Below, one piece after another: positions 7,001 to 58,367 of a stretch of DNA of 64,000 nt (the stretch's first letter is position 1; every line of letters begins with the position of its first letter). A program made the position numbers and the translations under genes. The notes under the pieces were generated by a model. It did not search any database, was not told the origin of the DNA, and was given only the letters and a program-made list of their open reading frames with translations. The DNA comes from Octopus sinensis (lineage: Eukaryota): NCBI RefSeq assembly GCF_006345805.1, contig NC_043019.1, positions 10,043,360 to 10,107,359 of the forward strand. The letters run 5' to 3'.

Positions 7001-9899
7001 GGAACCACATGCAGTTAAGAAGTTACAAAACAAAAAACCAAATCCTTCTTAATCACACAGCCATAGCCATGTCTTAAAGAGTCAAATTTAAATTGTTTCA
7101 GAACATCACCATCATTTAATGTCCATGTTCCTTGCTGGCATGGGTCGGATAGTTTAACAGGATCTGATGGGTCTAAGGACTGCACTGCGCCCAAGAGTCT
7201 GCTTTGGTATGGTTTCTGCCCTTTTGGAGGCCCTTTTTAATGCCAACAACTTTACAGCATGCACTGGGTGTTTTTCATACCACCAGTACTAATGAGGTTG
7301 CCATAGAACTCACAAAATTATACACTCCAAATGTGGGGTGGTCAGTTTTATGCTAAGGAATGATTGTTAAAGTACAGCAGGTTCTTCTTGTAGAGGAGTT
7401 ACATGGTTATTCACATTTATCAAAATAGGGTGAGAATAATCAATAAGAGGTGCAAAGTGATAAATAATGGTGATGAGATGGGTTTTCACGTTGCCAGCCA
7501 TCTTGGTCCTTTGTCATCACTTCCATGAGGCTAAGGGTTTTGAGGTCTGTCTTCAGCACTTTGTACCATGTCTTGGGTCTCCTTCTTTCACAAGCTCCAA
7601 CCACATTAAGTGATCAGCATTTCTTTATGCACATGTCCATGCCAGTGCAGCTTTCTTTCTTGCAAACATTTCTCACCATCTTTATACATTGTTCATGTGT
7701 ACTAACATGGCAAATTCAATGGAGCATCATCATCATCATCAACATTTAATGTCCATTTTCCATGCTGGTATGGGTTGGACGGCATGGCAGGAACTGGTAA
7801 AGCCAGATGTGGCACCAGGTTCCATTGTCTGTTTTGACTTGGTTGCTATGGCGAGATGCCCTTCCTAACACCAACCACTCCACAGAGTTCACATGCTCAA
7901 CTCATTTCTTCCCAGTTTTCTCATGTTCTCTGTGTTCGTGGCCCATGTCTCATTACCGTGCAGCATTGCAATTTTTACTCAAGCATCACGCAAGCTATCC
8001 TTCCTTCTGATGGGAAATATCTTGGTCATCAGCAGCAGAAGTAACTCCCTCAACTTTCTCAACGTCTACTTACTCTGGTTACTGTACTTTTAGAACAATT
8101 ATCTCCTTTGCTAATTACACCTCACACTAAACAAAAGCAACCATTTAAAATATCTAAAGAAGACAGACTAGAAATGTTTACAGAGGAAAGCCAAGTAATT
8201 AGGGAGAAGTACTGTTCACACAAGTCATTTATAACTTTAGAGACATTACACAAACAAACAGACACATAAATATCATCATCCTCTTGTTAATGTCCAGTTT
8301 CCTGTGTTTGCATGGGTCAGACAAAATTTATTAATGCAGTTTTCTAGTCTGATGCTCTTCCTGTTACTAACCATCACTTGTATCCAAGTATCACAATATT
8401 GTCCAGAGTGCTGCAAAACTGAAACAACCCAAACGTGGGGACATGTACTTATAGACAACTGCAAATGAATGACACTGATATGATGGTGATGTTTATTTTA
8501 TAATTAGTGCCTGATATCAAGACAAGGAGATATAAACACACATACACAGACAAATGTATGATGGGCTTCTTGGAGTTTCTATTTACCAAATTAAACTATG
8601 GTTGGTCCAGGGTTACAAAAGGCATGTGCACAAAGGAATTGAACCTGAAACCTTTTAACTTCTTAACCATGCAACCATGGTTGTGTGCGTGCACGCATAC
8701 ACACACACACACACACAGGTAGTTAGCTACAGACATTTAGTTTTAAGGTTTATGAAGAGGAATGAAGGAAGAAATCTGGATTCATGGATTAACTTTAAAC
8801 TGCAAACTTGGTCCACTAAAGACTCCCAAGGACCAGGTAGTGGATTGTCTACTACACAAGAGCAGTTAAAGTCAATCCAATTAGCTTCCACAGTTTTTGT
8901 TTACTCAATTTCAGTAACAAGATTTGGATTAACCAGGGGCTACATCACCTGGTCACACTGCAGGCATAGATTCCGGACTCTCTGTTGCCATCCAATTCTA
9001 TTGTTCATTGTATCTGGTAGGTCAGAAAGATTGCAATTTATGTTGTCAGAAACCGGTTTAATATAGGTCTTGGCTTGTTGTCCCCTGTTAGCTCCCACTA
9101 ATAATTTCGTCTTTAACTCTCCAGCAACACCCTGTAAATCTAACTCTACACTCTTTGATGCTGTCTCATACTGGACAAAGGTTCCCTAAAAATTGCTCAT
9201 TGGTCAGATGATCTATCCAGGTGACATTTCAAAACCACTCTTAGCAAGTGAACCAAGGTTACAATTTTAGAAATTTGTTCAAAGGATGCTATGTAGTGGA
9301 ATGAAACAGCTCCTACAGAGGCTGTTTCCACTGTGATTTACAGAGTCTATCTTTCCTCCAACTTTTCTTTCATGTTTCATTTTTATTATTATTTTGTGAT
9401 AATGTTATTTAGGTGTAAAAGCCTTTCATTGTACAGCTATCAATTATTCACTGATATTTTACCAAAGAAAAACGAAACTTACTGTGAATATTGGTAAAAT
9501 TCTGAAGCCTGCCACTATTTAAAAGCTGCAATAAATAAGAAACATCAAATTATATGTGTTAGTGATTATGTGTGTGTGTGTGTATGTGTATATATATACA
9601 TATATAGCATTAGAAAGGACACCCAACCATAGAAACCATGCAAAAACAGACACATGAAGCCTGGGCAGCTCTTCAGTTGGTCAACTCTTGTCAAACTGTC
9701 CAATCGATGTCAGCATGGAGAACAGGCATTAAAAGATAATGATGGTAATGATAATGATCACGATATGATTTGAAGGACTTAACTGTTTGAATCAAAGTAA
9801 TCAACAATTCAAAAGAACTGAATAAATTTACACAGAAATGAATGAATAAATTTTATATAAATATATATCCCTACATTTACTTATATACATACACACACC

Positions 9900-9949
<50 letters not shown>

Positions 9950-12900
9950 TATGTATGTATGTTGAAGTGTGTTAAACATTAAATTTCAAAATGTATTTAA
10001 CTGACACTTGAGTTCTTGACAACAAAAGCAAAATGACAAACTTCTTCTTCCATAAAAACGAAGAAGTCAGTCATTTTACATTTGTTGTTAAGAACTTAAC
10101 TGTCATCATCATCATCATCATTTAACGTCTGCTTTCCCTATTGGCATGGGTTGGACAGTTTGGGACTGGTAAGCTAGGAGGCTGCTCCAGGTTCCAATCT
10201 GATCTGGCAGTGTTTCTACAGCTGGATGCCCTTCCTAACGCCAACCACTCCAAGAGTGCAGTGGGTGCTTTTTATGTGCTATCGGCACGGGGGCCAGTCA
10301 GGCAGCACTGGCATCGACTACACACGAGGCGACAGAAATCTGATGATTACTATGAAAGTATGAAAGCGCTAACTGAACTTTATGAACATTGCAAAATATT
10401 TTTTTAATGTTTAACACACCTCAACATTGTAAAAAAATATTTTTAAATACAAAAATAAAAAACATGAAAACCAGACCATGTTGTAACTTTATTCACTGAT
10501 ATATTAATCTATACACATTTACACAAAGTTGTAAAAACTTTTAAATATGTGTGTGTGAGTGTGTTAACAGAGGTCACAGAAGTGACAGAGGGTGCTGGCC
10601 AGCACGGCTTATGCTAAAGCTACTAAAGCACTATATTTAATGACTGTCAAAGGGAGGTAAGTCCCTAGCGTACATAGCCGTATTGCAATTTCGAATTTTG
10701 GTGTAGAAAGACCTTAATTCTCATCAGTGGCTCTTAACGCCTAAGGTTAAACTCAACTTCCCTTGTCAATCTTATAAGAAACACTGTTAAAGTCATATGC
10801 TGATTTTCAAAACAGTGAAAGTGTAAACAAAAGAGTAGCTTATTTAACAATTAGAACCTGTGGCACGTAAAAAGCACCCACTACACTCATGGAGTGGTTG
10901 GCCTTAGGAAGGGCATCCAGCCGTAGAAACATTGCCAGATCAGACTGGGCCTGGTGCAGCCTTCTGCCTTCCCAGACCCCAGTTGAACCGTCCAACCCAT
11001 GCTAGCATGGAAAGCGGATGCTAAATGATGATGATGATGATGATGATGATACAAAATTAATAGAGGTCACAAAATTGAGAGAGTGTGCTGGCCAGCACCT
11101 CCTACGCTAAAGTAAAAGTTAAATTAACTCTAAAGTCACTAAAGCACTGATGACTGACAAAGGTGTTAAGAGCTGCTGTTGAGAATTAAAGTGTTCTACA
11201 CCAAGTTGCAATATGGCTACGTAAGCTAGGGACTCACCTCCCTTCGTCAGTCATTAAATATAGTGCTTTAGTGGCCTTTAGAGTTAATTTAACTCATATT
11301 TTAGCATAAGCAGTGCTGGCCAGCACCCTCCATCACTTTTGTGACCTTTATTAATTTAGCCCTTAGGTTCTAATTGCTAATAAACTACCCTTTTAAGTTT
11401 TATATATATATATATATATTAGTAAATCCCAAAAAAAACAAAGAACACACACACACACAAAAACAACACGAGGACCTGGTACATGTAAAGTATTAGCAGA
11501 CTTTCAGGGAAGGAAACAAAGATGGTTTAATGATTCGAGCAAAGCTCTTCTTCAGAAACAGAGGAAAATCCAATAGAAAAGGAAGACGAAGGAAGAAAAT
11601 CGCCAACGATTCACATGTGGTTACATTTTGAAATTTGTTTATATATACACACACACACACACACACAAATTTTACATATCTATGTAAGTATATATTCTTC
11701 AAGAAAGAAACTAAACATAGGCAAGGAAGTGGAGAAACTGGTGCTCTTCAAAGGAAGCCCTTTTCAAGATACCTGCTGCTCTAAATTACAGACTCTGCTG
11801 ATTATTAATAAAAGTAAACAATTAAATAATGTTGTAGTTATCAGTGTTTAGATAATCCCAGGTAGAGCTGTGATTAAGTAAACATATGGTTAAAATTATT
11901 TGTCTCATACCCATCAGGTTTTTTGCTTTCTTCATACACAGGAATACACCACCTAAATGTATTCTTATTTTAAACTGATATTCTTTCATTCTTTTCCTGA
12001 TTTTAATCAATGGACCCTGGTTATGCTGAAGCATCACTTTCTAGGGTTAAGTCAATTATATCAAACCCACCCTCCAATACTTATTTTTAATGAATGGTAT
12101 TTACTTATCATCACAAGAAGGACGAAAGGCTAAGTGGAGAGGATCTGAGCTGAAGAGACTTCCCAGTCCTGCCATTATTCACCAGCTGTCTCGGTTGAAT
12201 GGAGTTAGTTTATGCTGTCATTTCTAGTTGTTTCATCAACTTTGTGTTCCTGCATTGACTTTTGGCTTCATTGTTGTTTGGCAACAGCTCATTCCTGATT
12301 GAGAAGATCTCTTATCGGAGACACTCCAATAATGAGTATCCCACCTTTTTAAGGGTATGCAGGACTGCATTGTGTAATGTGTCCTTTCTCTTTTTTTAAA
12401 TAGTAGGGTGTAAATTGAAGGACAATTGGTTGGCTGCTGTATGCAGTAGGTCAAGTGACCATATAGAGGCTACCTTGTTGACTTCAGTTTTACAATGTTG
12501 TTATTATCTCACAGCTCCTAGTCAATCCTAATCAAGGATGCCTGTGATCAAAGACATTCAAGCCATAACTATTCTTTCATTTTGCCAGACAGAGAGTATC
12601 TCTAAGTACAGCATCCAACATGTCCTATTTATTTTAAGATGATAGAATTTGATTTGAGGGAGATTTGTCTACTATTTGTAGCGAGTTGAGCAACCACATA
12701 GAGGTTTTATATCTACTGATGCTATAATACTAAAACTAACTCCTCTTGAAGGGCAAACAGTTATATGTTTCCTCCAAACTGTAAAATGACAGAAATTCAC
12801 ATCAAATAACAGAAAAACACCGAAAAATGGAAAATACAATGGCCTGAGGATTGAACCCAACCAGAATTATGAAACAAAAAAGTGTAATTACCTCTGCATG

Positions 12901-16552: not shown

Positions 16553-16588
<36 letters not shown>

Positions 16589-17354
16589 TGAAGAAAGAAG
16601 AGAGGAAGAAGTAGAGAAAGGCAATTAATACTAATACACCTAGGCCAAATGCATCACATGGTCAGTAGAAGGTAGAGGCAAAGAACAAGAGAAAAAGAAG
16701 GAGAGAGAAGTGTTAACAGACAGTGGGGTGGGGAAGGAATACGTATTACATGATTAAAAAGTAAGCAGAAGGGAAAGGTGAAGAGAAAGAGATATGTTTA
16801 GGAAACAATATTTAGCAGAAGGTGATGAGGTCAAGGAAAAATAGATAAAGAGAGATGGACAGGAGAGGCAGTTATAGTGACCATCACTTAACGTATATGC
16901 ATAAGTGCAATTATTTATCATCTGCTCACTTAAAAAATTGATATTTGTTTATAAGGGTTAATTTAGCCTAAACTATGGATTCACAAAAAACATAGTTGCA
17001 AGCTGCCCAAGAAAAGATGCTTGTATAAATAGCATTTATCAGAGAGAAACAGCAATAATAAAAAATAGGGAAAAAAAAGCAACACTGATGGAGAATTGAG
17101 GAAATGAAGGTAGAACATCAAGTAAAGAAAGGTAAACTATGAATGCATTAAAAATGCAAAGTCCTATTAATTTTTATCATTCCATGGAATTTACATGGAT
17201 CCCACGAGTAAAGAATATATTTATCCATCAGATGCAATGTTGAGCACTAATTTTCACTGTTCAGCACTATCATATATATATATATATCATAAACATCATT
17301 GCTTAACATCCGCCTTTCATGTAGGCATGGATTGGACATATGTGTGTGTGTATG

Positions 17355-17399
<45 letters not shown>

Positions 17400-20300: not shown

Positions 20301-23300
20301 CAATGAAGATATATTTCATTGACTGTGAGTGTGTGTATATATATATACATACATACACACACACACACACACATAATTCGTTGACTGAAACAAAATCGCG
20401 AACATTTAACTGTAATATTGGATCTTTTCAAAGTTTATTGGAATATATTTGTCAACACATGTGCATAGAATACATTTCTCGCAGTCACAGACAAAATAGT
20501 TCTCGTGTTTGGCTTGTTACTATGGAAACAGGCATGAATGTGTCTGTGACTTGACTAAAATTACCCAAATTTTTCAAACTTTAAAAGCTAATAGCTCTTT
20601 ATTTATTGATTTATTGTGAAAATGAATTTCAAACCAGTGATTAGCATATAAAACCATATCATTACACCAAATATGAAATCAATTCGAGTAGGAATTGAAC
20701 AGATTGAAAATTGGCAGATCAGACAGAAAAGATCCTATTTTATTTTTTTAAACTGCAGTTAGACTTAATACAATAAAAAATCATTGATTGTTTTTGTTAC
20801 TGTAATATTAAAAGCTGTTCAACTTACTTTAGGGTGTGTTGTTAGGGTAGACGTACCAGCAATGTACACAATCTGTAAGTCAAACACAAAGAGAACAATT
20901 TAAAAAGCAACATCAAAATTTTAGGATTTTTTAATGTCTGTTGTGGATTAGAAGAGTCTAAAAAGGAATAAGTTTGCTACAGAATTAGCAATAGTCAAAA
21001 ACAGAGACACTGAACTAAATCAAAACATGCAAAGTATAATCGAAAAAAAAAAGGTATTGGGCTACATATAATCAAAAATAGACAAGAACTGAGCCAGACA
21101 GAGTCAAAACTAGAGAGTTACTTAATTAGATTATCATAATTGGAAATGCCATCACAAGTAAATATGCAAATTAGTGAGTTAAAACTAGAGAGGTACTAAC
21201 TAGAGACAGTTAAACCTAGTGTGGTACTGAACTAGGCAAAATTATTGAGAAACTGAACAAGATATAATGTGATAACTAGTAAGGAACTAATCTAGAGACA
21301 GTCAAATACACTAAGGTACTGGACACGAGACAGTAAAAATTAACGAGGTACTGAACAAGCAAAACTAATGAGATATGGAACTAGATACAGGGAAAACATC
21401 CAGCCTGCTGTTTCACGTATTCAGTCTTCTTTTATCCACTACACCATCAGTTTTTAAACTGTGTAAAGTATACAGGTATAGCTATGCCTTTAAGAATTCC
21501 TCTTAAAAAAACGTGATACAGGTTTGATTCCAATACACAGCATCTGGGGCTAAAATCTTCTATGGTAGCTTTGTAAGTAATAATTGAGAGCTGGAAATCA
21601 TACAAAAGTCTGTTATGGTCGCCATTTTTTTCCTCCATACTTGCTTGGGTTAGATAGGTCTTTTCTTGCAGAGTATTAGTTACTTGTTGCAGTTCATGTT
21701 CATTAGCTTTCACCACTTCTTCTCATGTCTTCCTTGGACTTGTTCTCCCACAGATTCCTTCTGCTTGGATCATTTCGTACTACTTTACCATACAATCAGC
21801 TTGCATCCTTATCACATACTGAACCAACAAAACTCTTTTCTCTTCTTCATTACATCGGATGCCTACTCTTCTACAGTTTTCCCCTCAGCTCTTCTGTGTC
21901 CTTGTTTTTAACCTGCCTGCAATAACAATGCATTTCTTGTGCACCCTTAGTTTATAATAGAAACACCATTTGGAAGAATTCATATCAAGTCCTATCCCTT
22001 TTCCAATGGCAGTAGGATCCTGTTTCTGCCCCTGCTAACTAAAATTTTGAGAGTTCAAGTCTAGGTTTCACTTCCAAGTTCAGAATTTCTGCATTAATTC
22101 TTTGAGCAATTCAATTATGAGAAATAGGACAGGAGTATATACAAAAGTTTCCATGACAACCAGTTTCAAACTTCACTTTTATGGCCAGAAGAAATATAAT
22201 AAACAAGAGTGGGCTGCAAACTGGACACTGATGGACATCTACCATGGTGTTAAATTGCCAAATTTATTGCAAACTCACACCATGCTAAGGATGTCCCTAT
22301 ACACAGCTTCTATGGCAACAGACAATAGCATATGATGCGATATATTTTGATGAATAAATGCTTTTCTGATGTAATTTGATTGAACTATTAATTAAAACTT
22401 GAAATATAAAAAAACTTCTGACTCAACCTGGTACACACACATATCTTTTGACAAAAAATTGGCAAGAAAATTAATAAAATGGTGCTTGAAAACAAAAATG
22501 TCTTGTGATATTGTTCTATATGAGATCTTATTACTTTCACCATTGTAAATACAGTGAACTACCGATTAGCCCATTGCAGTTTTGTTCACAAAATGCTATA
22601 AAAAAGCAAAATGAGTATTATAATGAATGAACTTACTTTCTCATACTGTGAAGAAATTACCCAATTGCTACTGCCAAGACATACACCTGAGCTTGTGGCC
22701 ATGGCATCTAAGGCACCAAAAAATTCCTAATTTAAAGACACATTAACAAACAAACATTAATAAATTACACGTAAAATGTAAGAAAGCATAAAAGACAATA
22801 ACAATATCAAAATATTGAAAATTCCTAAATTACAAGACCTTGGAAAACCTGGGACGAGGTGGTGAAGCACGACCTTTGAACTTTAGGTCTCACTGAGGAA
22901 TTGACCAGAGACCGAGACCTTTGGAAATATGCTGTGCGTGGGAAGACCCAGCAGGACAAGTGAGATCATAACCCGTGGCCTCTACATGGGATGTAGCCAG
23001 TCCACTTATGCATACCTTTCCTTCTTGTGACACAAACCCTACTTGTGAAGACCTGTTGAGGCAAGTGAAAATCAAAATCAAAATTGAAATCGATCAACAT
23101 CAATGGAAATTGTAGCTGTGATACCAGTGCCGGTGGCACGTAAAAAGCACCATCCGATTGTGAAAGAGTCGATTAAACTGATCCCGGTATTTGACTGATA
23201 CTATATAATAAAGGTGATGATAACTGAAATGTAAAAATCCCTGGGAAATGTTGTTTACAGCATTTCTGAAAATAGCCAAAGAATCATTGCTTTGGCTTGG

Positions 23301-23731
23301 GTCAAAATACAGGTTTCTTGATATGTTTGACAAACCAAGATGCATAAACCAAACACCAATCAACTCAAGTAATTTAGTAAAGCCATACACTGATTGGTCA
23401 GAATACAGTTTGCAAAACTTAACATCTTGGAGCTTATACAAATGTATTTAAAGCACATGTTTTAGCCATCTCACTACAGTTGTAAATTGTAAAACATAAC
23501 TGTCACCACTACTACACGAAATTGAAGATTGCATAGTTTAATGCATGAAAGTACCAGTTCAATCAGAATGGACTTTCAATATTCTATCATTTCATTACAT
23601 TATATTATAAGATTGTAAATAAAACATGAAAATCAGACAAAGTTCGAATTTCTTTGAGTAATATATTCTTCTATACACAATCATACACATCCGTGTATAT
23701 ATGTACATACATGTATGTGTGTGTGTGTGTG

Positions 23732-23770
<39 letters not shown>

Positions 23771-25698
23771 TCATCATCAATTGACATGGTTGTCCATACT
23801 GGCATGGGTTGGACAGTTTGACTGAGCTGACATGCTGGAAGGCTGCACCAGGCTCCAGTCTGATTTGGCATGGTTTTCTATGGCTGGATGCCTATCCTAA
23901 TGCCAACCACTCTAAGAATGTAATGGGTGCTTTTATGTGCCACTGGCACAGGTGCCATTTGCGTGACACTGGTATCTGCCACCACTGTGACTTTTCTCGG
24001 CTTTATGGGTCTTCTTCTCAAGCATGACATAATGCCAAAGGTCTTGGTCATTGCTTCCATGAGGCCCAAAGCTTGAAAGGAACTTGGCTACTTTGCCTCC
24101 ATGGGGTCCAATGCTTCAAACGAACTCAGCCACCTTGCCTCAATGAGGCCCAACGCTCGAAAGGAACCCAAGCACCTCATCTCCATGAGGCCCAATGCTC
24201 GAAAGGAACACAGCCACTTTGCCTCTGTCAGGCCCAATCCTTGAAAGGAACTCAACTACTATGCCTCCATGAGGCCCAACACTCAAAACAGAGCCACTTA
24301 GCCTTCGTGAGGTCCAATGTTCAAAAGTTGATTTTCTTTCATGCCACCAGCATGGATGCACTTGGCTTGACAGGCCTCTGAAGCAGAGCACATTGCCAAA
24401 GGTCTCAGTTACTTGTTATTGCCTCTCTGTGGTTCAAAGGTCAAAGATCATGCTTCACCACCTCATCCCATGTCTTCCTGGATCTACCTCTACCACAGAT
24501 TCCCTCAACTGTTAAAGATCAGCACTTCCTTATAGAGTTGTCCTCATCCACATGCATCGTATGACCATACCAGCACAGTCATCTCTCTTGCATACCACAT
24601 CTGATTCCTCTCATGCCTAACTGTTCTCTCAAGATGCTTACACTCTGTTGAACATGCACATCCAGCGAAGCATACTGGCTTAATTTCTCTCAAGTCAATG
24701 GATATCCTCAGCTGTTATAGCCCATGTTTCACTGCCGTGCATCAAACAATCTGCCTTTCACTCTGAGGTAGGAGCTCTCAGAACTTGGCCCAACTTAATC
24801 TTATGCTCTCAGAACATCCACCTCCACTACTAACCTGGTAGCCTATATACTACTCTAGCTTGCCCCACTGCCAGTTGATGGAATCTATTTTCCGCACATG
24901 TCCAGCATTTATTATGCCTGTGAACCTTCCACATACAAAAGTTAGTTTCTCTGTTAACCTTACTTTGATGTTGCTGCACCTTTTGTGTGTCCAAAGCTTA
25001 CACTAGGTGCATCTTATGGAGTTTCTACCTATGCCTTTTCTACAGACTGAGCAGGGCCATCTACCTGAAGGGATTTGTGATTTTTCTGCCTTCCTACTTA
25101 CTATGACTTTGGTTTTTGCTAGGTTAACTCTAAGGCCCTTTCATTCTAGATCTTGTTTTCATACCTGGAACCTCTTCTCTAACTCAGGTAGCAATTCAGC
25201 CATAAGAGCAAGGTCATCAGCATAGAGGCGCTCCCAGGGGCAGCCTGTCTTGAATTCTTCTGTTATTGCTTGGAGGACTATGATGAACAAGAGGGTGCTG
25301 AGCACCGATCCTTGTTGAACCCCTACTTCTACCCTGAATTCTAGGCTGTACTCATTGCTCACCCTCACCTTACCAGTAGCGTCCTTGTACAAAGCTTCCA
25401 CAGCTCTCGTCTATCCCTAGTTTCCGCATTGACCACCAGATAAGGGATCAGGGGACTTTGTCAAAAGCCGTCTCCAAATCAACAAAAGCCAAGTACAGAG
25501 GTTTATCTTTGGCTATGTATCTGTCCTGCAATTGCCTTACCAGAAATATAGCATCAGTGGTGCTTCTACCTGGCATAAAGCCAAACTGCATCTCATCTAG
25601 ACTAATTCTCTCCTTAATTAGTTGGGCTATGAATCTCTTTGTAACCTTCATTGCCTGATCCAACAACTTGATAGCTATGTAATTATTTCTATTTATAA

Positions 25699-25740
<42 letters not shown>

Positions 25741-28700
25741 ATAAATATTAAGGAATAAATCCAAATTTACAGGGAAAAAATCAGATTTAGGATTAAATCC
25801 AATTTTATAGTAAAATATTATATAATATTAATTAGAGACAAAACCACTATTTTGCAAAACAAACAAGGAAAGACTTAATCAATACATAAAATTTTAATAA
25901 AAAGTAAAAAAAAACGCCACTACAATTGTTTCATGTCTTGATCGACAATCTTCAGGTGGATTTCCGATCTAAAATATCAATATTTTAAAATAAGTATAAA
26001 AAATAATTTTAAAATAATTAAAGTATCAATGAATATATAATCTATATATAACCTATATATAATCCATATATAATCAATATATAAACTAAAATAAACCTAT
26101 CAACAATTAAATATAAAACAAAATAAAAATAAACTATATATACACCCATACACATATAACTAATTATATATTACCATATCTAAATACATACACTAACTCA
26201 CACACCTATATATATATCCCTATACATACACATAAAAACGTCTAGGCAACGATAAATAAAATTTGGCTATTTTATTTATTTATCGCTGCCTAGACGTTTT
26301 TATGTGTATGTATAGGGATATATATATAGGTGTGTGAGTTAGTGTATGTATTTAGATATGGTAATATATAATTAGTTATATGTGTATGGGTGTATATATA
26401 GTTTATTTTTATTTTGTTTTATATTTAATTGTTGATAGGTTTATTTTAGTTTATATATTGATTATATATGGATTATATATAGGTTATATATAGATTATAT
26501 ATTCATTGATACTTTAATTATTTTAAAATTATTTTTTATACTTATATTTTAAAATATTGATATTTTAGATCGGAAATCCACCTGAAGATTGTCGATCAAG
26601 ACATGAAACAATTGTAGTGGCGTTTTTTTTACTTTTTATTAAAATTTTATGTATTGATTAAGTCTTTCCTTGTTTGTTTTGCAAAATAGTGGTTTTGTCT
26701 CTAATTAATATTATATATCTCTCTCTATATAAACGGCAGTTTGTCTGTGCGTGTTTCTGTGTGTCTGTTTTCTCGTACCCTCACCCTGACCACGGCTTTC
26801 AACCGATTCTGATGAAACTTGACACACACATAGCCCAATGTCATAATTCAAAACTAACGCAGCGAAAATTTTGAAAAGTTCCCCCAGTTCTGAAAAAAAT
26901 CGATAAATTCGACATGGGGTCGAGAATAAAAAAAAACAAACCACAGACTGTCTAGGGGACGCAACTCAACCTTTTATTACTCTCAAAAAAAAAATTTACC
27001 ATCATTTTTTTTCCATTTTTTGGCTATAACTCTCTAAAAATGCTTTATAGTTATTTCCCTTACAAACCTGAGCAACGCCGGGCGATACTGCTAGTATATA
27101 TATATAAGACCCATCAAGCCAAGTGAAATTGTAGTCGTGGCCGATACTGGCATCGAGTAGCTGGCAACCATGCCGGTGGCATGTAAAAAGCACTATTCGA
27201 GTGTTGAGCCTCATGGAGGCAATGTGGCCAAAGCCGGTGTCATGTAACTGGCTCGTAAAAAACACCATTCAAGCATTGGGCCTCATGGAGGCAATGTGGC
27301 TAATACTGGTGTCATGTAACTAGCACCCGTGCTGGTAGCACATAAAAGCACTCATTACACTCTCAGAGTAGTTGGCATTAGGAAGAGCATCCAGCTTTAG
27401 AAACCATACCAAATCAGACTGGAGTTCACCCCATACCAGCATGGACAATGGACGTTATATGATGATGATATATTATATATATATATACACACACACATAC
27501 ACACACATATATATAAGGTTTCTCGCAAAGTTTTTTCCTCACCAGCTTTTCATTAAAACCAATAACTTGTACATGGGCAAGGCATGAGTTGATATCATCA
27601 AATGTATAACATTTCTTCCAGGTAGACGGATGTACAGCATCACATACTGGAGGTGGTAGGGTTCTAGAAAAGCCAAAAAAGAAAAATTATCAGTTATGCT
27701 TGTTTTCATTTTGCCTTAAGTAGGCACTGATCAAGCAGGCATAAAATCAAGTGTTTCCATGACCATCCCATCAAGAGTCCATTTCCTCTTTCAAAATGAT
27801 GATTATAATATCTGATATAATTTTACATTAAAATCTAAGCAGATAATTCATGAAGTTAATCCTCTTCAAAAGCACACTCCACATCTCCCTATTTCTTATC
27901 TATTTACAATTCTATCATACTGTTGCTATCCACCTCTTCCTCTTTACCTACCACAATCCTTCCTTACTCATTGCTACTTTTTTTTTAATAAACCCCCTCC
28001 AAACTGAGATTCATCACTGACCATACCTCCACCAATGTTCACCATTCGATGCATTCACCTCTAACCCCATCTCTAACCATCTGTCACTCTCCTTTCATGC
28101 TCTCCTGAACCCAACCCCATCTACCCATTCTCTGTTCCTGTTCTCTCTTTCTCCACCTTCTTGAACTTGTGGGTTTGCCCTGACACCTCATCTCCACCAT
28201 CTTTTGTGGTAACCAAGTCTCTCCTGTACAGGAAGACACCTGTCTCTGTCTTTCTATCCACAAATCTATAACCTTCAATATTGTATCCCCCACCCCATTC
28301 AGCTGAAAGCTTCTTGTCCTGCCAGTTACCTCAGACTTCACTAGTGCTGGTGCCACAAGAGAAGCATCCAGCACACTGCAAAGCAACTGCTACTAGAAAG
28401 GCATTCAGCCATAGAAACCATGCTAAAGCAGACATTACAGTCCCCTTCTCTCTCCCTCTCACTCTTTCATGTGCCTCCTTTATAGCAAGACACTGGTTTC
28501 TGCCTCTCTATTTCTCTGCTACACTCTAACCTTTCAACATCTGACACAAGATGCCCTCACTCCTCTCAAAATATCTTGTCTTGCAAGTTACTTGGTGACC
28601 CTGTCAGTGATGGTGCCATGTAAATAGTATGCAATTCACACTGTAAAGTGGTTGGCATTTGGAAGGGCATCCAACTGTAAAAATCATGTCAAAACTGACC

Positions 28701-31700: not shown

Positions 31701-34700
31701 GAAATAATACCAGGCTGTATTGTCTGAAGGTCTACTAATTCTGCCAATTCACTGCCTATTAACCTAAAAATATCTTCCATTCATTTTATACTTTTTTAAT
31801 ACCCTTCATATCAAAGGATCAATCAAATATTTCTTTTCTGTTTTATATAACTAAATATGGACTGATGTTTTAAAATAATAATTCTTTTATTTTCAGAGAA
31901 AATAACTTCAAATGAAAAAAAAAGGCATTGGAGGTGTGATGTGTATCCTGTGTGCACACAAGGATAAAATAAAATTTAATTCAATATATTCTCATACGAA
32001 TTCATATTTCAACAAAATGACATCAACAGTTATATATCCTCTGCATATTGCTTATGCATATGTAAACAAAGAAAAAAAGACATTTTGATTCAGCCGTCTG
32101 CCAGTTTTGAAAATAATCAAACCAAAATCAATAAGTTCAAGCCACTCAACCAATGAATATTTCTGCCAGATTTGGTGAAAATCCATTCAGCCCTTTCCCA
32201 GTAATATTGCAAACCCACAGATAAAGACGAGCGGCTATAATACCCTACGTTCAGGGTAATTAGCTATTTAAGTTATATTTCAATATTGTTCGTTAGCATG
32301 CTTCTAAATGAACCTTTTTAACTTAGCATCACAAGTGCATAAAAATTATAACCATTGCAGTTTGTGAGGGAACAGAAATAATAATTCAAGGATATAAATA
32401 ATATAATACAAATATTAGTTTTATAAATAGATATCATATTTATAAAAAAAGATATCTCAACTAAAGTATATAACAAATCACTTTTAAAGTGCAATGTTAG
32501 TGAGTTTAATAAATTAAAAAAACAAGACTATTTCTACACAATCAAATTAATTACCTCTGGAGGTAGAAATTCCAAAGTGCCATCCACAAATACACGACCA
32601 CCACATTCCTTTAGTTCTTTACTCTGGAAGAAGGAAAAAATTTTTAGAGGAAAGATATCATTTACATAGGATTAGAATTCATAGCTAATAAAGGAAAACT
32701 TTAATAAAATTTGAGAATTCATCACTTTAAAAACATTCTTTATACTCGAGTGCCTTTGTTGTTGTCGCCAGCACCTTTGTTCTTTGGTTGACATTCTGCC
32801 ACTTATCCTGACTCATCCCCTGTAGTCCAGTATCCTGAAATCAACTTTTGCCAGTTTTCCTCATGGCTTCCTTTTCCCCTGATTACTTCAAAGATCACGT
32901 AGCAATCCTCTAACCATCCAACTTAGTGCAGTCTTCTCCCTTGTTCACAATCTCTGATTTCTCTGGTTACCAGTTTTTACTGCTCATGCATGCAAACATA
33001 ACACATCCAGCAATGCAAGTTCACCTCATTTTTTGCACATCTTCCAAATCCAATACTCATTTTTGGCTAATATTTACTTTCATTTACATAATTAACAATA
33101 TTAGGTTATAAAGAAAAAAAGTATAATCAAGTATAAAACTAAAGCATGGTGATCTAAATATGTTCTGAAAAAGAAAAGAAATAAATAATTGGAAACATAT
33201 TCGTTCATTTTCTGACTTACCACATCCCTTTGTAACTGTGTTGGTTGGTTGTTTGGAGGAGTCCAGTTGGGTAAGTTATCAAACTTAGAACTGAAAAGAA
33301 ATTTGAAAAATAACGGATTTCCATTGAAGACTGAAAGACATTATAATATTGTTATGGCAAGAATCATGACATCCCCTGTGAGAATGGACTAGCTGAACTT
33401 GTGTAAATAGTAGCATGTTTGACTGAGCGTGAGAAATGAGAAATTGCAGGAAGTTAAAAAGTGTCGTTTGTGAGTTTGTAGAGTCACAGGATATTGTTGA
33501 GAAGTTGTTATAGTTTGTTGAGAGTTGTTTTGGATTGGTTTCAGTTGTTGGCAAGGTATTTGGGAATACATCAAAAGTGACAGTTGGTGTCTACCTCATT
33601 ACATGGTACCATATATCACACTGTTATAGTGTAGAATACAAAAGTGACATACAGTAATCACATTACAAAAAATAAGCACAACCGAACGTGGGGGTGTAAC
33701 CGGGTCACTTATGAGTACCCCTCATTCATTGGACAATGAACTTTGCTTGCAAAGACCTATTGAGGCAAGTGAAAACCAACCAAAATCGCTGACGTGGCCG
33801 ATGACAGTACCACCTGATTGGCACTCCTGCCAGTGGAACATTAAAAGCACATCCAAGTGTGATCGTTGGATTGGCTCCTGTGCTGGTGGCACATGAAAAA
33901 CAACATTCGAGTGTGGTCGTTGTCCATGTCACTGCACTGGCTCCCATACAGGTAGCATGTAAAAACACCTTTTGAGCATGGGTGCGGTCGTTGCCAGAAC
34001 CGCCTGACTGGCCCTCGTGCCGGTGGCACATAAAAAGCACCCACTACACTCTTGGAGTGGTTGGCATTAGGAAGGGCATCCAGCTGTAGAAACTCTGCCA
34101 GACCAGATTGAGCCTGGTGCAGCCTCTGTCAAACTGTCCAACACATGCCAGCATGGAAAGCAGACGTTAAACGATGATGATGATGATACAAGATATAAAT
34201 GGTTTCATCTAATGCCCAGTTTAATACTACCACCTGGCACCTGGAGAGTCTTTAACTGAATTCACTTTTGCAAACATCTGAGTAAGATTTCTGGTTGGAG
34301 GATTATTTTTACCCTCTCTTTTACTCATCTCAGAAATCCAGTGTGAATGTGAGAACATTATGGTCAATTCAACTGATCCGTGTAGGAAAGGTGCAGCCAG
34401 AGGGTAGGTGTCCTTAGAGGTAAAAAAATCCAATGGAGAGGTAGTGTCCGTCAAGGAAAAGTAAGAGTTGGTAGTGGTAGAATATAGGATCAAAGTGAGA
34501 CCACATGAGCGCGTGATATATAACGGGAAAGTTTACGAAAATAAACAAAAGACGAAGGCAGGTGGAGTAGAGACAAACAAATGTATTAGTATAGCGCTCA
34601 GCAATAGAAATAGAAAAAGTCTTTTATGTTTCGAGCCTACGCTCTTCGACAGAAAGATACAGAAAAAAAACAAGGAGAGAAAAAAATGTGTGTAGGAGCC

Positions 34701-37700
34701 AACGATCGATCATGGCGCTATACTAATACATTTGTTTGTTTGTACTCCACCTGCCTTCGTCTTTTGTTTATTTTCGTAAACTTTCCTCTTATATATATCA
34801 ACATATGTTACAGATATGATGTCAGAGAAAATCTATTTGAGGTTAATGTGAAGTAAATAGATGTACAGTTCTGCTCTCATATGAATAAAACAGCTAAATA
34901 AGAAGAGGGATGGAAGGTGAAGGTGAAGAAGGCATGAGAATGACAGATTGGATACAGAGGCAAGGCCCAGTGTTCATATAAACACAATGTTTTTAGAACC
35001 TCCCTTTCCTTGTGATGGAGGAGGCCTCTCAAGCATAGTAGATTAGCAACCATATCAACCTTTTGTCATTTCCTTCACAAGGCTCAACAATCTGAGGTTA
35101 GTTTTCACTTCTTTGTCCCACATCTTTCCGGGTTTTCCTTTTCCACAGGTTCCATCCACATTCAGCAATCAGTAATTATTTATGCAGCTGTCCTCATCTA
35201 TACACATCACATGGCCATACCATCAGACTGCTCTCTTGTACAATACATCTGATTCCCTTTATGCCCAGTTTTTCTCAGATAAAGATGCTGTACACATACA
35301 CAAGACTTGTAATAAATAAATCACTATCATTTAATGTTCCATGTGGACATGGGTTGGATGCTTTGATGGGGGGTCCAAGAGGTCCAAAGACTGCATTATG
35401 TTCCAGTGTCAGCTTTGACATGGTTTCTACGGCTGGATTGCCCTTCCTAATACCAACCACTTTACAGAGTCTACTGGATGCTCTTCTTTCATGCCTCCAA
35501 AACAAGTGAGGTCACCATGCAGCTTGTAAGACTATGAGACTCAAAGGAGTTGGGGAGCTTTATGCTCAGCAATGAGGGGGGCAAAGAAGATTTCTTAGTG
35601 TAGAGGAGTTACATGAGCATTCATATTTAGTAGGGAGGGTGAGAAGGACCAGGTGGAACTGGAAAGAAATTATGGTGGTGATGGACCCTTCAAGGTGCAT
35701 GGTGGGTAGGCATGAGTGGGAATAGAGGAATTAGGAGTGTAAGTAGATGGGGGTTGCAAGAGTACACAAGGGAGTGAGAGATGGGGAGAAAGAGAAAGGG
35801 GAAAGGAAACATGCAGCAACTATAAAGACTGGGTAGAGTGAAGGGTGGATGTAGTGAAGAGTAGATCAATGGAGAGTGGGTGACTAATGTTGCATGAGTT
35901 GAGAGAAGTAGGCATTGCAGAAGAAAGCAAGGGAAAGTGGCAAGATAGTAATGACAATACAGTAGACAGGGGAAAGATGAGAGAGATGTTATGTGGTTGG
36001 GTAGATGGCAGTAGGGGTGAGGGAGAAAAGAGGCAAGCATAGCACCTGAGAAGAGTGAGAAACACATGATGATAGGAGAGGAGAGATGATTTAGTGGCTC
36101 AGTGTGTGAGTGATTGATGTAAAATATGGATGGAGAGAAGAGTATTAATGGAACATATGTATATATCACCATCCCCTTCCTTAATTGGAAAAAGTGAGGG
36201 TTGGTGACAGGAAGGGCATCTAGCTGTACAAAATACAACTCAATAAATTCTGTCTGATCCATGCAAGCAGGGAAAAACTGATGATGAGGAGGATGATAAC
36301 ATCTATATATAATGTTGCGTAGGTGAATAGAAGGACTGAATGCAGTTCCCACAATTCCAATATCATCCTCTTATACTACACTTTGGTATAGTACTAATAA
36401 TGTTGCTTTGAAGACATTGGCAATACACATGACATAGTTCTTTTTAATTTAAGCTACAATTTTATATTTATGGAGATATACTTGCATAGCAAGTGACTTG
36501 ATCAGAGATCGTGTGCTGAAACAAAAACAAATGCAGCGTGGACGGTGTTTATAATAATATAATAATAATAATAATAATAATGAAATTATTGTATACAGTG
36601 CTCAGGTGCACCACAACTTGTAAGAGTATGTGCAGTAATGTACAAATGTCTGGAAAGCGAACAATGCATGAGTCAGATACATGCTTGTGTGTGTATGGAG
36701 GGGAGAAAATCAGGTGTAGTGTTGGCGAATCTCAGGAAGCATGGAAGTTTTGAGGATGCAGTGTTCCGACAACTAACAACTGATGCCGGCAGTTTGTTCC
36801 ATGCTTCAACAACTCTCAGCGTGAAAAAATGTTTCCGAAAGTCATGGGAACTGTGCTGTTTTCATCCACGGGTGTTAGATGGGTGGTGTTTGAAAAGGTG
36901 CTCAGAGTTATTGTTTGTACGATGGTTGATAATTTTATGGGTGTCTGCCAAGTCAGCTGTCAGACGTTGGAGTTTCAATGTGTCCATGCCCAGGGAAGTA
37001 AGGCATTCAGGATATGGCAAATACCTGATGGAGGGTATTCTTTTGGTTGCACGTCGCTGAACAGCTTCCAGACGATTGATATCCTGGGCAAGATAGGGGT
37101 TCCAGACTGGTGATGCAAATTCCAGGTGAGGTCTTACCATAGCTATATAAAGCCGCAGATAGATAGTCGGAGAGTGGCTCACAAAGGATTTGGTGAGTGA
37201 TGCCAAGATACCCTCAGCCTTCTTGACAATTTTAGCGATGTGTTTTGTCCAACGCAAATCACTGTCGACAATAACACCTAGGTCACGTTCACATGAAGAC
37301 TTTTTGAGACTAGTGTTGTGGAGGGAGTAGGTGGACGCTGGGTTTCTCCTCCCAAAATGCATGGTGGTACATTTGTCCACAGCCAGCTTGAGTTGCCAGT
37401 CCATGATCCACTGCTGCATTGTGTCCAGGTCTGCTTGCAATAGAGATCTATAGTGTACAGGATTTGACCTCTTTATTTCGAGGTACAGCTTGATGTCATC
37501 TGCATATTTCAGCACTGTGGCATTCTTTAAGTTGGCATCTATGTCATTAACATATGCAACAAATAAAAGGGGGCCAAGAACAGATCCCTGTGGTACACCA
37601 GATGTCATCTCATAGATCGAAGAGTGCTGTCCTAGAACTGTGACAATCTCTTTTCGGCCGAAAATAAAGGACTTCAACCACTTATAGAGTTCATCTCTTA

Positions 37701-40999: not shown

Positions 41000-41302
41000 T
41001 GCCTATGTCGAGTATTTTCAATATTTTGATGGTTTGTTCCCGTCAGCAACTCTCCACATTCTGCCACGAATTTAATCAGTTATTTCACTGAAACAATAAA
41101 ACTTCGCTAACGACCTTGATTAGTAAAAAACAGCCTTTATTCATCTTGATATTTTATATTTCTTTATACTGTCTAACGATATCGCCGAATTTATTACACG
41201 TGTATATTGTGATTTTCTTCACTTTACAATGAAGATCTTTATATTAACTTTACAAAAACCTACTAATATAAGTAGGTTTTTCAATATTTTGTCCAATTTA
41301 CG

Positions 41303-42637
41303 ATGAATAATTTTGTTGGTTTTTCGAAATATAAATTTGGATTAAAATTTCCTGGCATATGTCAGCTTTTAAGTTTACAAATAAAATATTCTACTTCAAA
41401 TTATTATGAAGATTTTACAAACAGTGCCTCTATTTATGTACACTGGCCTTACTGTGCCAAAAGATGCACGTACTGCAATTTTAATAAATATATCAATTCC
41501 AATGTTAACAACATACGAATGACCGATTCCTTAGTAACCGAAACTAAAGCTTTACTAAAACTTAGTGGAGTAAAGCAAATAACGTCCATCTTTTTCGGCG
41601 GTGGAACACCTTCTCTCGCACCTCCAAGCACTATACAACGTATCATTGAATGTGTAAAGCAGCTGGCAAATCTCTCCAACCGAGCTGAAATTACACTTGA
41701 AGCCAACCCAACAGCATTAGAATTCCAAAAATTGCGCGACTTTAAAACAGCGGGTATCAATAGACTCTCTGTCGGCGTCCAATCATTAAACGATGCGCAG
41801 CTTCGAATTCTTGGCCGAAATCACTCTGCAGCAGAGGCAATTAGATGTGTTGAAGAAGCTATAAATCTTTACAAAGGAAGCGTTTCGATAGATCTAATTT
41901 TTGGAATCCCTGGTCAGACTCTAAAGGATTGGTTGGAAGAATTGAAGAGGACTTTGTGCTTTTGTGATGATCATTTGTCCTTGTATCAGTTGATTGTTAA
42001 GAGAGGAACTCCACTTTATCATAAAAGATCTAAAGGAATTATGAAGTTTCCTAACGATGATATTTTAGCAGATATGTATGAAGAAACAGTAAAAATATTA
42101 GAGGAAGAACATTTTTCACGTTATGAAGTGTCAAACTTTGCCCGAAATGGTGCTGAGAGCATCCACAATAAATCTTATTGGCAAGGTAAGCAGTATATTG
42201 GAGTAGGCCCAGGTGCTCATGGCAGGTTTGTTACCAAAGGTCAAAGTCTGGAAGTAGGACATAATTTCCGACAGGCCCGTATTCAGATACTGGAGCCTGA
42301 GCAGTGGATGGCTGCAGTTGAAAGATTCGGACATGGCACAAAAATATCAGTTCCACTATCGTTGAAAGATATTTTAGAAGAAGGTCTGGTGATGACTCTT
42401 CGTACAGATGAAGGTATTGACTGTTCAGAATGGCACCAAAGGACTGGTGTGGATCTACTGAAAATTCTTTTTAGCTCTGAAACAATTCAAGAGTACATGC
42501 TGCAAGAGTTCTTTTCCATAAAAGGAAATCGGTTAAAAGCTACAAAAAAGGGAATACTTGTACTCGACAGACTTCTTCCTGATTTCATATTAGCCTTGCA
42601 ACACTACTTTGAATCATTCGAGAAAAATCAAAGGTAA
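41303..42637 (+). CDS. RSAD1: Radical SAM domain-containing protein 1, mitochondrial (HemW-like heme chaperone), single-exon CDS, 444 aa
   Basis: YVHWPYCAKRCTYCNF (CxxxCxxC), FFGGGTPS, TLEANP, NRLSVGVQS, DLIFGIPGQT, HLSLYQL, YEVSNFA, HNKSYW, GPGAHG, ARIQILEPEQWM; acid-free N-terminal extension; AATAAA at 42731-42736. Confidence 0.95.
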   Translation: MNNFVGFSKYKFGLKFPGICQLLSLQIKYSTSNYYEDFTNSASIYVHWPYCAKRCTYCNFNKYINSNVNNIRMTDSLVTETKALLKLSGVKQITSIFFGGGTPSLAPPSTIQRIIECVKQLANLSNRAEITLEANPTALEFQKLRDFKTAGINRLSVGVQSLNDAQLRILGRNHSAAEAIRCVEEAINLYKGSVSIDLIFGIPGQTLKDWLEELKRTLCFCDDHLSLYQLIVKRGTPLYHKRSKGIMKFPNDDILADMYEETVKILEEEHFSRYEVSNFARNGAESIHNKSYWQGKQYIGVGPGAHGRFVTKGQSLEVGHNFRQARIQILEPEQWMAAVERFGHGTKISVPLSLKDILEEGLVMTLRTDEGIDCSEWHQRTGVDLLKILFSSETIQEYMLQEFFSIKGNRLKATKKGILVLDRLLPDFILALQHYFESFEKNQR

Positions 42638-48958: not shown

Positions 48959-51900
48959 CTATTGTAGAAGACAAAAATAGAGAATAAGCCAGGTATTTAA
49001 AAACTGAGACCAATAACAACAGCCATAAAATATTGTTGCAATGCCTATGTAAATGAGGCAGGTGTTGGTGGATTATCAACTAATGACTGTAAATATTCAC
49101 ATAACTCTACTTAGTAATTTTTTTCTTTATCCTTGTTTTTGTAAACAGTGAAGTCAGTGTTTTGCTGATGAGGTCATAATAATAATGAAATATATCAAGA
49201 GTTATCTCCCATACTTGGTTAAATAATAAAATACTCTAAGTCACTGACTCATTGTTTTTTTTTACCTTACCACATTTATATCCAATGGTTTATTAATGCA
49301 TACTACATTAAGTATTTTAATATCAATTAAACTACATAATGATGTGAAAGAGTACAATCTGTGCAAACAAGTAACGGTCTTTGTGAGCAAGGAATAAATG
49401 CAAAAAGCCCACAAAGTAGAATAAGTTAGTTTGCCATGAAAAGAAAAAGCAGATCTAATGGAGCTTTTCATTGGTTAAGAAGTGGGTTTAGGTGTCATCC
49501 CAATGCATGGTGCCATGAACAAGAATCTACCACCCATAGCCTGAGGTTGACCAATGCTTTGTGCAAAAACCTTATTTATATAAACAAGTCAATTGTGACA
49601 TCAAAGTGGCTGTTCCATTACTAGTTTAACCCCAGGCAGATCTTCTGCCAGCTGGTTACTGGTGCAAAACTGCACCCTTTCTATTCCATATATATTGCTA
49701 GCAGGGAAAGCAAACCCCTACCATCCTCTAGCAGACAACAGGATCTCGAGACTGACTTGATTTTGAGCTGCTTGGCTCATCCTCAGTCACAAGTGCCTGG
49801 CTCCTAGAGAGAAAGCCAGGCTCTGCTCCGGCCAACAATATATAAAGCAACCATCAAAATAGCTGGACGTAAAATTTCAAGAAGAGATCAGAGTAGCAAC
49901 TATAAATGCACACACGTGTAGACATACATGCACATATATATATATTTATTTCTTTATTGCCGACAGGGGAGCTAAACATAGAGGGGACAAACAAGGACAG
50001 ACAAAGAGATTAAATTGATTACATCAGCCCCAGTGTGTAACCGGTATTTATTTAATCAAACCCGAAAGGATTATAGGCAAAGTCGACCTTGGCAGAATTT
50101 GAACTCAGAACATACCAGCAGAAGATATACCTATTTCTTTACTACCCACAAGGGGCTAAACACAGAGAGGACAAAGGACAGACAAATGGAATAAGTCGAT
50201 TATATCGACCCCAGTGTGTAACTGGTACTTATTTAATCGACTCCGAAAGGATGGAAGGTAAAGTCGACCTCGGCAGAATTTGAACTCAGAACATAGCAGC
50301 AGACGAAATACCGCTAAGCATTTTGTCTGGCGAGCTAACATTTCTGCCAGCTTGCCACCCTATAAATATACGTATGTATATATTACAATGAAACATGCAG
50401 GCGCATGCATTTTAATATTCTTAAGTTATTACACCTGGAAAAGTACAGAACAAGATTTCAACAGTAGAATTTGCCTAATTTGTCACCTCTAAAGGAAATT
50501 AAAAAGTACTTAAAATTAAAATTCTATTGTACTTAAAATATTGCAGCCAAGAATAGCATTTTAAAAATTTTCTATATTTTATTAAAACAAAATTTATAAA
50601 AACATTACTGGGTTTTTCCAAAAATAAGCTTCTGTCCAACATGCCCACTGAAGTCCCCAGCCACGAAGATGAGATCCTTGTCATTTGTTTTAGAGGTTGC
50701 CTACAAAAGAATATCATAAAAATGGTCCTTCTGTTCATTTAGTAGGCCCACTTGTGGAACATAGGCAGAGATAACTGACGCTATGCTATTCTGCATGATG
50801 AGCCTGAGCTTAAGCACTTTCACTCATTCTGACTACTTCTATGACCTTATCCACCCATTTCTCTGCAAGAAATATGCCCACACTGCATACCCCATCACTG
50901 TTACTTTCCCAAAAGATTTTATACCTATGTGTCTTGCCTGTGAGGAGCCTGGCTGAAGCTCCTCTCCACCTTGCCTCATGGATGCAGCATGCCTTCATTC
51001 AAGCAGCTCAATTTCGTTAGACCTACCTTTCAGTGTGCCTATATTGAGTGCCAATCATGAGAACTGGGAAAAGAGCACGGGAAGGAACATGGGCAAGAGA
51101 GATGGTATTGGGCACCTGAAAAGAAGGTTTCAGTGATTGTGTGGTAACAGACATGTCACATCAGTTGGTCTTGCTTTAACATACCATCAATCAAATATGT
51201 TAAAATTGTTGTCCCTATTGGTAGTGAGTAGCATTGTAAATATAAGCGTTATTGCTGCAAATATGAACAGGTTAATGTATAAATTAATTATATAACTGAT
51301 CTGCTATTGGTTAGTCCATTATATATATATATAGGGAGAAAGAGGTAGGTGGTTTGTTAATTTACCAATAATTTCCTGAGTAATATATCACCATTTGGTG
51401 CATGCAGTAGTGTGGGCAAATGTTAGTGGCGGGGAAGGACGGACGAAGGTATACAAGTCTTCTGGTACAGAAGCAATGCAGAGCCCTGTAGGGGTTTCTG
51501 ATAGTGTGCTTATTCCTTAATACACACATATATTTCAACACAGCTCCTACATGTCGAATTCCACTCACAAGAATTTTGTCAGGCTGAAAACTAGTAGAAG
51601 GCACTTGTCCAAAGTGTCACACACTGACTTCAAGCCTGAATGTCATCATATTATTGTAAAGTAAACTTCTCAACAGCAACAGCCGGCACCTCTGATGTGC
51701 AGGATTTTCTTTTGAAATTAGTAGGTTTTTACATATGTAATTTAATGAAAAATATTTGAGAAAATGCACAACACTTACTCTCATATTGTCAAATGAGATC
51801 CCGACTTTCTCTGAAAACCTGTCGCTAATTATTGGAATCTTGGAGTATCTCTGGCTGAAATGGTTCAGCAGAATAAACTTTGCACCCATTTTCATCCCAA

Positions 51901-57900: not shown

Positions 57901-58328
57901 TAATATTTCCCCTAATCCTTTTCATGCAAGTTAATATTTCCCCTAATCCTTTTCATGCAAGTTAATATTTCCCCTAATCCTTTTCATGCAAGTTAATATT
58001 TCCCCTAATCCTTTTCATGCAAGTTAATATTTCCCCTAATCCTTTTCAGGCAAGTTAATATTTCCCCTAATCCTTTTCATGCAAGTTAATATTTCCCCTA
58101 ATCCTTTTCATGCAAGTTAATATTTCCCCTAATCCTTTGAACTTCATTCAATGATTACTGATTTTATGGTTTCCTCTTCAGTGCCTCATCATAAGTTCTC
58201 ATGATGATGATAATGATGACATACAGCAGTTTGGCAAGATCAAGACTCCAAATGAGAGAAGAGGTAGCATTTTACATGTGCATGTGGCATTTTGATGTAC
58301 CACATGCATTGCATTATAGTAGAGTAGG

Positions 58329-58367
<39 letters not shown>

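Follow-up and report, generated by a model that had tools for sequence, protein, structure and literature searches.

An intronic, near-perfect 0.9-kb AT-rich palindrome in INTS9 of Octopus sinensis and O. vulgaris, with Helitron-like insertions at it in both species

The human palindromic AT-rich repeats (PATRRs) PATRR11, PATRR22 and PATRR17, the last of which is in an NF1 intron, are lineage-restricted, near-perfect AT-rich palindromes predicted to extrude hairpins or cruciforms (PMC4940405, PMC1851657). These repeats, followed by fold-back or long terminal inverted repeat (TIR) transposons, are the closest known objects to a palindrome that we describe here from a 64-kb stretch of Octopus sinensis DNA (the window). 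The palindrome is 899 bp in total (25819-26717) and lies in an intron of INTS9, which is encoded on the minus strand. The window is from a coleoid cephalopod and, in a 5.3-kb comparison, shows 100% identity to O. sinensis GCA_006345805.1. Comparison with related species suggests the palindrome was acquired once, in the ancestor of the sister species O. sinensis and O. vulgaris after the O. bimaculoides lineage had split off. That a Helitron-like element is also found at the palindrome in both species, at a different site in each, is a new finding of the present analysis.

The left arm (25819-26262, 444 bp) is the downstream arm in INTS9 sense and the right arm (26269-26717, 449 bp) the upstream one, with a loop of only 6 nt, TTGGCT (26263-26268; AGCCAA in INTS9 sense), between them. 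When the left arm is aligned globally to the right one in reverse complement, a single mismatch and three indels (1, 2 and 4 nt) are found. An A-tract at 25906 is longer by 1 nt in the left arm, AT at 26546-26547 and ATAA at 26280-26283 are present in the right arm only, and an A/G substitution separates left position 26249 from right position 26286. The substitution and the ATAA indel are both within 14 nt of the loop and make up a central asymmetry zone (26249-26286). The sequence-only reading had described near-perfect, AT-rich arms with four differences around a TTGGCT loop, and this was borne out base for base by the alignment and by an inverted-repeat search of the window, which found the palindrome as three collinear blocks. 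The 64 kb contain no other inverted repeat comparable to it: the second largest reaches arms of 103 nt, but at 75% complementarity, and arms of the next that is near-perfect are 86 nt long.

The A+T content of the palindrome is 79.1%, compared with 62.9% for the window, and ranges from 68% to 92% among 74-bp bins with 70% in the central 100 bp. Tandem sub-repeats with 11-bp and 13-bp units are found within the arms, approximately 170 bp per arm is complex, non-repetitive sequence, and the outer end reads TATATA, the same motif as the adjoining microsatellite. The predicted RNA fold of the INTS9-sense strand has an energy of -667.6 kcal/mol, against -158.9 +/- 6.8 kcal/mol for shuffled sequences (z = -75), and the DNA fold of the palindrome -461.7 kcal/mol (z = -75). 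Because of the arm asymmetry beside the loop, 14 nt at the hairpin tip are unpaired in the predicted folds.

To place the palindrome among octopods we compared the INTS9 loci of O. sinensis (L001), O. bimaculoides (L002), O. vulgaris (L003) and Argonauta hians (L004), using one genome per species. The O. vulgaris assembly is a de novo Oxford Nanopore Technologies (ONT) assembly, and that of O. sinensis was made from PacBio plus Hi-C data (PMC10700109). In O. vulgaris the palindrome is present, with the ortholog of the left arm at L003 17399-17842, an identical loop at 17393-17398, and the counterpart of the right arm split by a Helitron-like insertion into 16571-16860 and 17233-17392. In the four-arm alignment, the loop and both centre-proximal arm differences are common to the two species. 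No trace of either arm was found anywhere in the O. bimaculoides INTS9 locus, and there is no assembly gap near the site.

The boundaries of the lineage-specific block could be followed on both sides. Its conserved upstream boundary is the end of a short interspersed nuclear element (SINE)-like repeat (27107-27430; other copies are present within the window), which reads gatgggtctt in INTS9 sense. Its downstream boundary, conserved in all three Octopus species, is the end (aaataattacatag) of a 5′-truncated long interspersed nuclear element (LINE) fragment on the minus strand (24800-25700) that encodes reverse transcriptase (Pfam RVT_1, E = 1.7e-16). BLAST without a low-complexity filter gave mostly microsatellite noise here, and only the comparison with a longer LINE copy was used. 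Between the left arm and the LINE fragment are an adjoining AT-rich tail of 81 bp (25738-25818), composed of ~3.4 copies of a 20-bp unit, and an (AT)n microsatellite on its far side (25701-25737). On the other side, a (TA)6 microsatellite remnant (27095-27106) marks the site that received the palindrome and later the Helitron-like element; its counterpart is (AT)~11 in O. vulgaris and (TG)n(AG)n in O. bimaculoides. In the latter species the SINE end and LINE end are only 35 bp apart (L002 10120-10154), so that this different microsatellite occupies the site and the 81-bp tail, which O. vulgaris shares with O. sinensis, is missing along with the palindrome. The palindrome, the 81-bp minisatellite tail and the (TA)n tracts are thus confined to the sinensis/vulgaris lineage.

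At this locus O. sinensis and O. vulgaris differ by substitutions at 0.41% of sites (169 in 41.6 kb), which with a split 2.5 Mya (PMC10700109) implies a rate of ~8e-10 per site per year. At this rate, and without conversion, the single substitution in 444 bp between the arms gives an age of 1.4 My as a point estimate with a 95% upper bound of 6.6 My. As the loop and both centre-proximal arm differences are common to the two species, the palindrome must predate their split, and combining its presence in both with the bound from arm divergence places its origin at ~2.5 to 7 Mya. It had been proposed from the sequence that this was a very recent insertion or one homogenised by arm-to-arm conversion. 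The palindrome is evolutionarily recent, being absent from O. bimaculoides and with arms that differ by only 1 substitution, but it is older than the species split, and homogenisation is neither needed nor visible.

Only the A/G substitution and the ATAA indel predate the split, and both are arm-specific in each species. All other differences in the four-arm alignment are singletons. One O. sinensis arm has lost 2 nt, one O. vulgaris arm carries a substitution and a 1-nt insertion, and the rest are changes in the length of A-tracts. In neither species do the two arms have a change in common, so there is no evidence of arm-to-arm conversion since the split. Orthologous arms showed 1 substitution where 3.6 were expected (P = 0.12), which is compatible with neutrality. 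The alignment therefore shows arms that evolve independently at about the background rate, and the palindrome looks like a neutral passenger, with no sign of conversion, selection or central deletion. Taken alone, it is most likely neutral repeat-derived DNA.

The two pre-split differences cluster within 14 nt of the loop, with P ~0.03 if they arose as one event and ~0.001 if as two, which suggests a process specific to the centre such as imprecise tip formation or later repair of a break at the centre. Differences clustered in this way match the leftover expected of hairpin-tip processing or centre-break repair. Since the split, the centre has remained identical in O. sinensis and O. vulgaris over ~2.5 My each, which argues against strong instability. 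The idea that the locus might be a fragile site thus finds no support where pronounced fragility is concerned, as the only structural changes seen are transposon insertions.

These insertions involve the Helitron-like element, which we call H. In O. sinensis, H is 377 bp on the plus strand (26718-27094), directly abuts the outer edge of the right arm with its TCTCTC start and ends with GCTAG. The O. vulgaris copy is 372 bp (L003 16861-17232), is in the opposite orientation and is inside the upstream arm. Identity between the copies begins and ends exactly at TCTCTC and GCTAG. Both insertions fall between A and T, neither shows a target duplication, and each site is intact in the other species. 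The O. sinensis site (tatata|tatata) is found empty in O. vulgaris at ~L003 16557-16575, and the O. vulgaris site (caacaa|ttaaat, corresponding to window 26428|26429) is intact in both O. sinensis arms. A candidate subterminal palindrome, CGCCGGGCG (27076-27084), is GC in composition and ends 10 nt before the H 3′ end; the stem of this 3′ hairpin is 3 bp, and its predicted fold is no more stable than that of shuffled sequence. The H insertions thus carry the diagnostic features of Helitrons, with the 3′ hairpin alone being weak.

Between the two copies there are 16 substitutions in 371 bp (4.3%) and three indels. Because this is ten times the orthologous divergence, they are paralogs that inserted independently after the split. 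We also considered a single ancestral H that was moved by inversion through the palindrome. This was ruled out by the arm segments, of which the outer one keeps its orientation in O. vulgaris, and is contradicted as well by a divergence between the copies ten times that of orthologous DNA. No further H copies were found in the window or the other loci compared, leaving two at these loci, and the window has no autonomous Rep/helicase partner. Recent Helitron activity has been reported for O. vulgaris and amounts to 8 families and 178 young insertions (PMC13282606).

Two independent H insertions at one palindrome suggest a target hot spot. Two hits in one 0.9-kb structure of a 2.7-Gb genome would be very unlikely unless the site is preferred; our own back-of-envelope estimate, which generously allows thousands of new insertions in each lineage and lets AT-rich DNA be preferred 50-fold, puts the chance of a double hit at <1%. 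It is possible, and we put this forward tentatively, that long AT-rich palindromes are preferred landing pads for Helitron-type (HUH, single-strand-acting) transposons. If this were general, Helitron integration would be steered by the extrusion of hairpins or cruciforms, or by single strands exposed at such palindromes. The recurrent insertions are a testable lead on structure-directed targeting by rolling-circle transposons.

As to how the palindrome itself arose, a fold-back transposon origin is slightly favoured over an inverted duplication in situ, and we consider the chance of a fold-back, long-TIR transposon insertion at a TA site to be about even. The microsatellite between the SINE-like repeat and the 5′-truncated LINE would have been the landing site, and a non-autonomous fold-back DNA transposon consisting almost wholly of two long TIRs would have inserted at a TA there. 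The whole palindrome is an inverted repeat, as expected for the terminal inverted repeats of a fold-back or long-TIR element, and a target duplication of TA, TTAA or ATAT would be consistent with its ends. Octopus genomes contain many recently active TIR families and families of miniature inverted-repeat transposable elements (MITEs) (PMC13282606). A transposon origin is favoured because one event brings in the complex ~170 bp per arm, which is lacking at the O. bimaculoides site.

Several observations weigh against a transposon. No second copy of an arm or terminus was found by blastn, nhmmer and fuzzy terminus matching in the window and the four loci, ~0.2 Mb together, although a single copy in ~0.2 Mb excludes only a very abundant family. 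A target duplication is unreadable because the candidates are palindromic, lie in a (TA)n context and look like an extension of the arms. The lineage-specific block is also asymmetric, as the 81-bp tail beside one arm is missing from O. bimaculoides too, and a clean insertion of a TIR element leaves this tail unexplained. A 6-nt spacer between 445-bp TIRs is unusually tight for an internal-deletion derivative, and the termini are unlike the canonical ends of Tc1/mariner, piggyBac and hAT elements. Exact-pattern scans with the arm and H sequences gave no match in metagenome, viral and bacterial/archaeal collections, which hold no octopus genomes and are weakly informative here, and a protein database search with spurious arm and H open reading frames (ORFs), an indirect search for copies, gave no match.

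Some of the same observations are what an in-situ inverted duplication would lead one to expect, and we regard this as a serious possibility, at somewhat less than even weight. Here local AT-rich DNA (the left arm plus tail) would have been copied in reverse, either through priming from a fold-back at a break or because replication switched templates at a fragile (TA)n tract, with the TA-rich arm end guiding the switch back. The block is asymmetric in the way this implies, since one arm runs into the 81-bp tail without visible discontinuity and the other abuts (AT)n directly, and the TATATA outer end would supply microhomology with the adjoining microsatellite. The lack of another copy in ~0.2 Mb fits as well. 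That the ancient differences are all within 14 nt of the centre is predicted by hairpin-tip processing or centre-break repair, but such scars are possible after a transposon insertion too. O. bimaculoides is without either arm, so duplication in situ needs an earlier separate insertion and thus two events rather than one, and the template-switch palindromes described to date are mostly tens of bp rather than 445 bp.

The other explanations that we weighed are far less probable, among them a mitochondrial control-region (NUMT) origin of the arms, to which we gave a low prior. An old palindrome kept near-perfect by arm-to-arm gene conversion, like the large palindromes of sex chromosomes, could account for the high arm identity and for the substitution deficit in the arms (1 against 3.6 expected), which is non-significant. 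We consider it improbable, given that O. bimaculoides has no palindrome, that no substitution or indel is common to both arms of one species, that neither lineage has lost the arm-specificity of the two pre-split differences in ~2.5 My, and that the 372-bp insertion in one O. vulgaris arm was neither removed nor copied across. A selected hairpin-RNA locus, whether a precursor of endogenous small interfering RNA (endo-siRNA) or microRNA or a structure regulating INTS9 splicing, seems more doubtful still. It would fit the extremely stable hairpin predicted in the sense transcript and the strong ADAR activity of coleoids (PMC9989829), but the palindrome is confined to one young lineage, shows arm indels and a rate of change close to background, has an interrupted arm in O. 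vulgaris and matches no Rfam family. Least credible, to the point of being negligible, is an assembly artefact from a fold-back chimeric long read or a read with a missed adapter. The O. sinensis assembly does rest on PacBio continuous long reads, and the right flank starts with ATCTCTCTCT, which resembles the first 10 nt of the SMRTbell adapter. An adapter artefact at this flank was ruled out, however, as TCTCTC is the 5′ end of the Helitron-like element in both species. The flanks of the palindrome are not mirror images, one being a LINE and the other a SINE-like repeat, and the window has zero Ns. Most directly, an independent assembly of another species, made with another technology (ONT; PMC10700109), shows the palindrome with a neighbouring Helitron arranged differently, which, short of an error common to both assemblies, excludes an artefact and answers the early worry about a misassembly or foldback chimera.

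Whatever its origin, the palindrome would be expected to have consequences for RNA and DNA. In O. sinensis pre-mRNA a duplex of ~445 bp would form, the type of substrate used in ADAR hyper-editing and by Dicer. The predicted O. vulgaris fold has helices of 290 bp and 154 bp around a 372-nt bulge. A-to-I editing in metazoans concentrates in duplexes of nearby inverted repeats, and coleoids have strong ADAR activity (PMC9989829); by analogy, hyper-editing and endo-siRNA production from the palindrome are plausible. At the DNA level it would be an AT-rich site prone to hairpin or cruciform formation. Nothing in the comparison indicates a selected function, with conservation not beyond neutral and no known RNA family, as would mark a structured RNA gene; an Rfam search of the whole window gave no match.

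A nearly spacer-less 0.9-kb palindrome has thus persisted for millions of years in two germline lineages inside an essential gene, which bears on the real in vivo instability of such sequences. The three species also provide a natural comparison of double-stranded RNA in a housekeeping pre-mRNA, with an intact hairpin in O. sinensis, a bulged one in O. vulgaris and none in O. bimaculoides, that is relevant to both ADAR and Dicer.

The host gene was identified from translated exons on the minus strand that match human INTS9 (PDB 7BFP chain A, E = 1.5e-100) and the INTS9 proteins of O. vulgaris, O. sinensis and O. bimaculoides. Mapped coding exons are at 39399-39274, 33280-33200, 32623-32543, 30506-30345, 29434-29354, 27665-27543, 22726-22634 and onward. 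Mapped coding exon 6 (27543-27665, residues ~168-208) and coding exon 7 (22634-22726, residues ~209-239) enclose the 4.8-kb intron 22727-27542, which contains the palindrome 825 nt downstream of the exon 6 5′ splice site and 3.1 kb upstream of coding exon 7. Exon mapping agrees with the earlier placement in an INTS9 intron, though calling it intron 7 is correct only given one non-coding 5′ exon. This intron is ~4.8 kb in both O. sinensis and O. vulgaris, compared with an alignable span of ~2 kb in O. bimaculoides (L002 ~9448-11479), and the difference in length reflects several lineage-specific repeat insertions besides the palindrome. Within the SINE-like repeat that flanks the palindrome is a 72-bp tandem duplication with 83-85% identity (27177-27320). 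The O. vulgaris annotation includes a 706-aa INTS9 isoform, and its gene model (L003 2001-73610) spans 71.6 kb, compared with 45 kb for the O. sinensis model.

Two other inverted repeats in the window are also present in O. vulgaris. Another INTS9 intron contains a MITE-like inverted repeat with 82-nt arms (34516-34597 and 34715-34796) that are 95% complementary and separated by a 117-nt spacer; it is found at L003 7341-7622. The pair with 86-nt arms (10194-10279 and 10863-10948; 92%, 583-nt spacer) is conserved at L003 32738-33494 and is probably an oppositely oriented SINE-like pair. A single ORF of 453 codons on the plus strand (41276-42634), with Radical_SAM and HemN_C domains, is RSAD1-like. 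It is divergent from INTS9, ~1.9 kb from the first INTS9 coding exon and present in all four octopod loci, an arrangement that suggests a shared bidirectional promoter region. On the same strand as INTS9 and ~10 kb from its start are exons of ELAC2 / RNase Z(L) (51620-63925, minus strand; PDB ELAC2, E = 4.6e-56), placing another RNA-processing enzyme with a metallo-beta-lactamase fold near INTS9.

Compared with the PATRRs, the octopus palindrome is larger (899 bp as opposed to ~190-600 bp) and less AT-rich, with 79% A+T against more than 90% in PATRR11 and PATRR22 (PMC4940405). It has a 6-nt loop and an asymmetric tip with 14 nt unpaired, its centre is unchanged between two species, each represented by one genome, and it is not known to show the central breakage, translocations or deletion-based size polymorphism of the PATRRs. 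It otherwise resembles them in its restriction to a lineage, its near-perfect symmetry and AT bias over several hundred bp and its almost spacer-less centre; palindromes of this sort can sit within an intron of a housekeeping gene and are predicted to extrude hairpins or cruciforms. Compared with fold-back and long-TIR elements (Drosophila FB and Galileo, C. elegans Tc7 and palindromic MITEs), it has no readable target duplication, no recognisable superfamily termini and no second copy in ~0.2 Mb, and the adjoining 81-bp tail is lineage-specific too. What it shares with these elements is that it consists of almost only two long inverted repeats with tandem sub-repeats in the arms, at a TA-rich site, and is present in one lineage and absent in a relative. 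H departs from canonical Helitrons in its 3′ hairpin with only a 3-bp stem, in being seen as only two copies and in having no autonomous partner identified. In its 5′-TC and 3′-CTAG (CTRR) ends, insertion between A and T without target duplication, non-autonomous size and a short GC palindrome (CGCCGGGCG) that stops 10 nt short of its 3′ end, H is like canonical Helitrons, and like them it is mobile, with two paralogous copies at different species-specific sites in opposite orientations.

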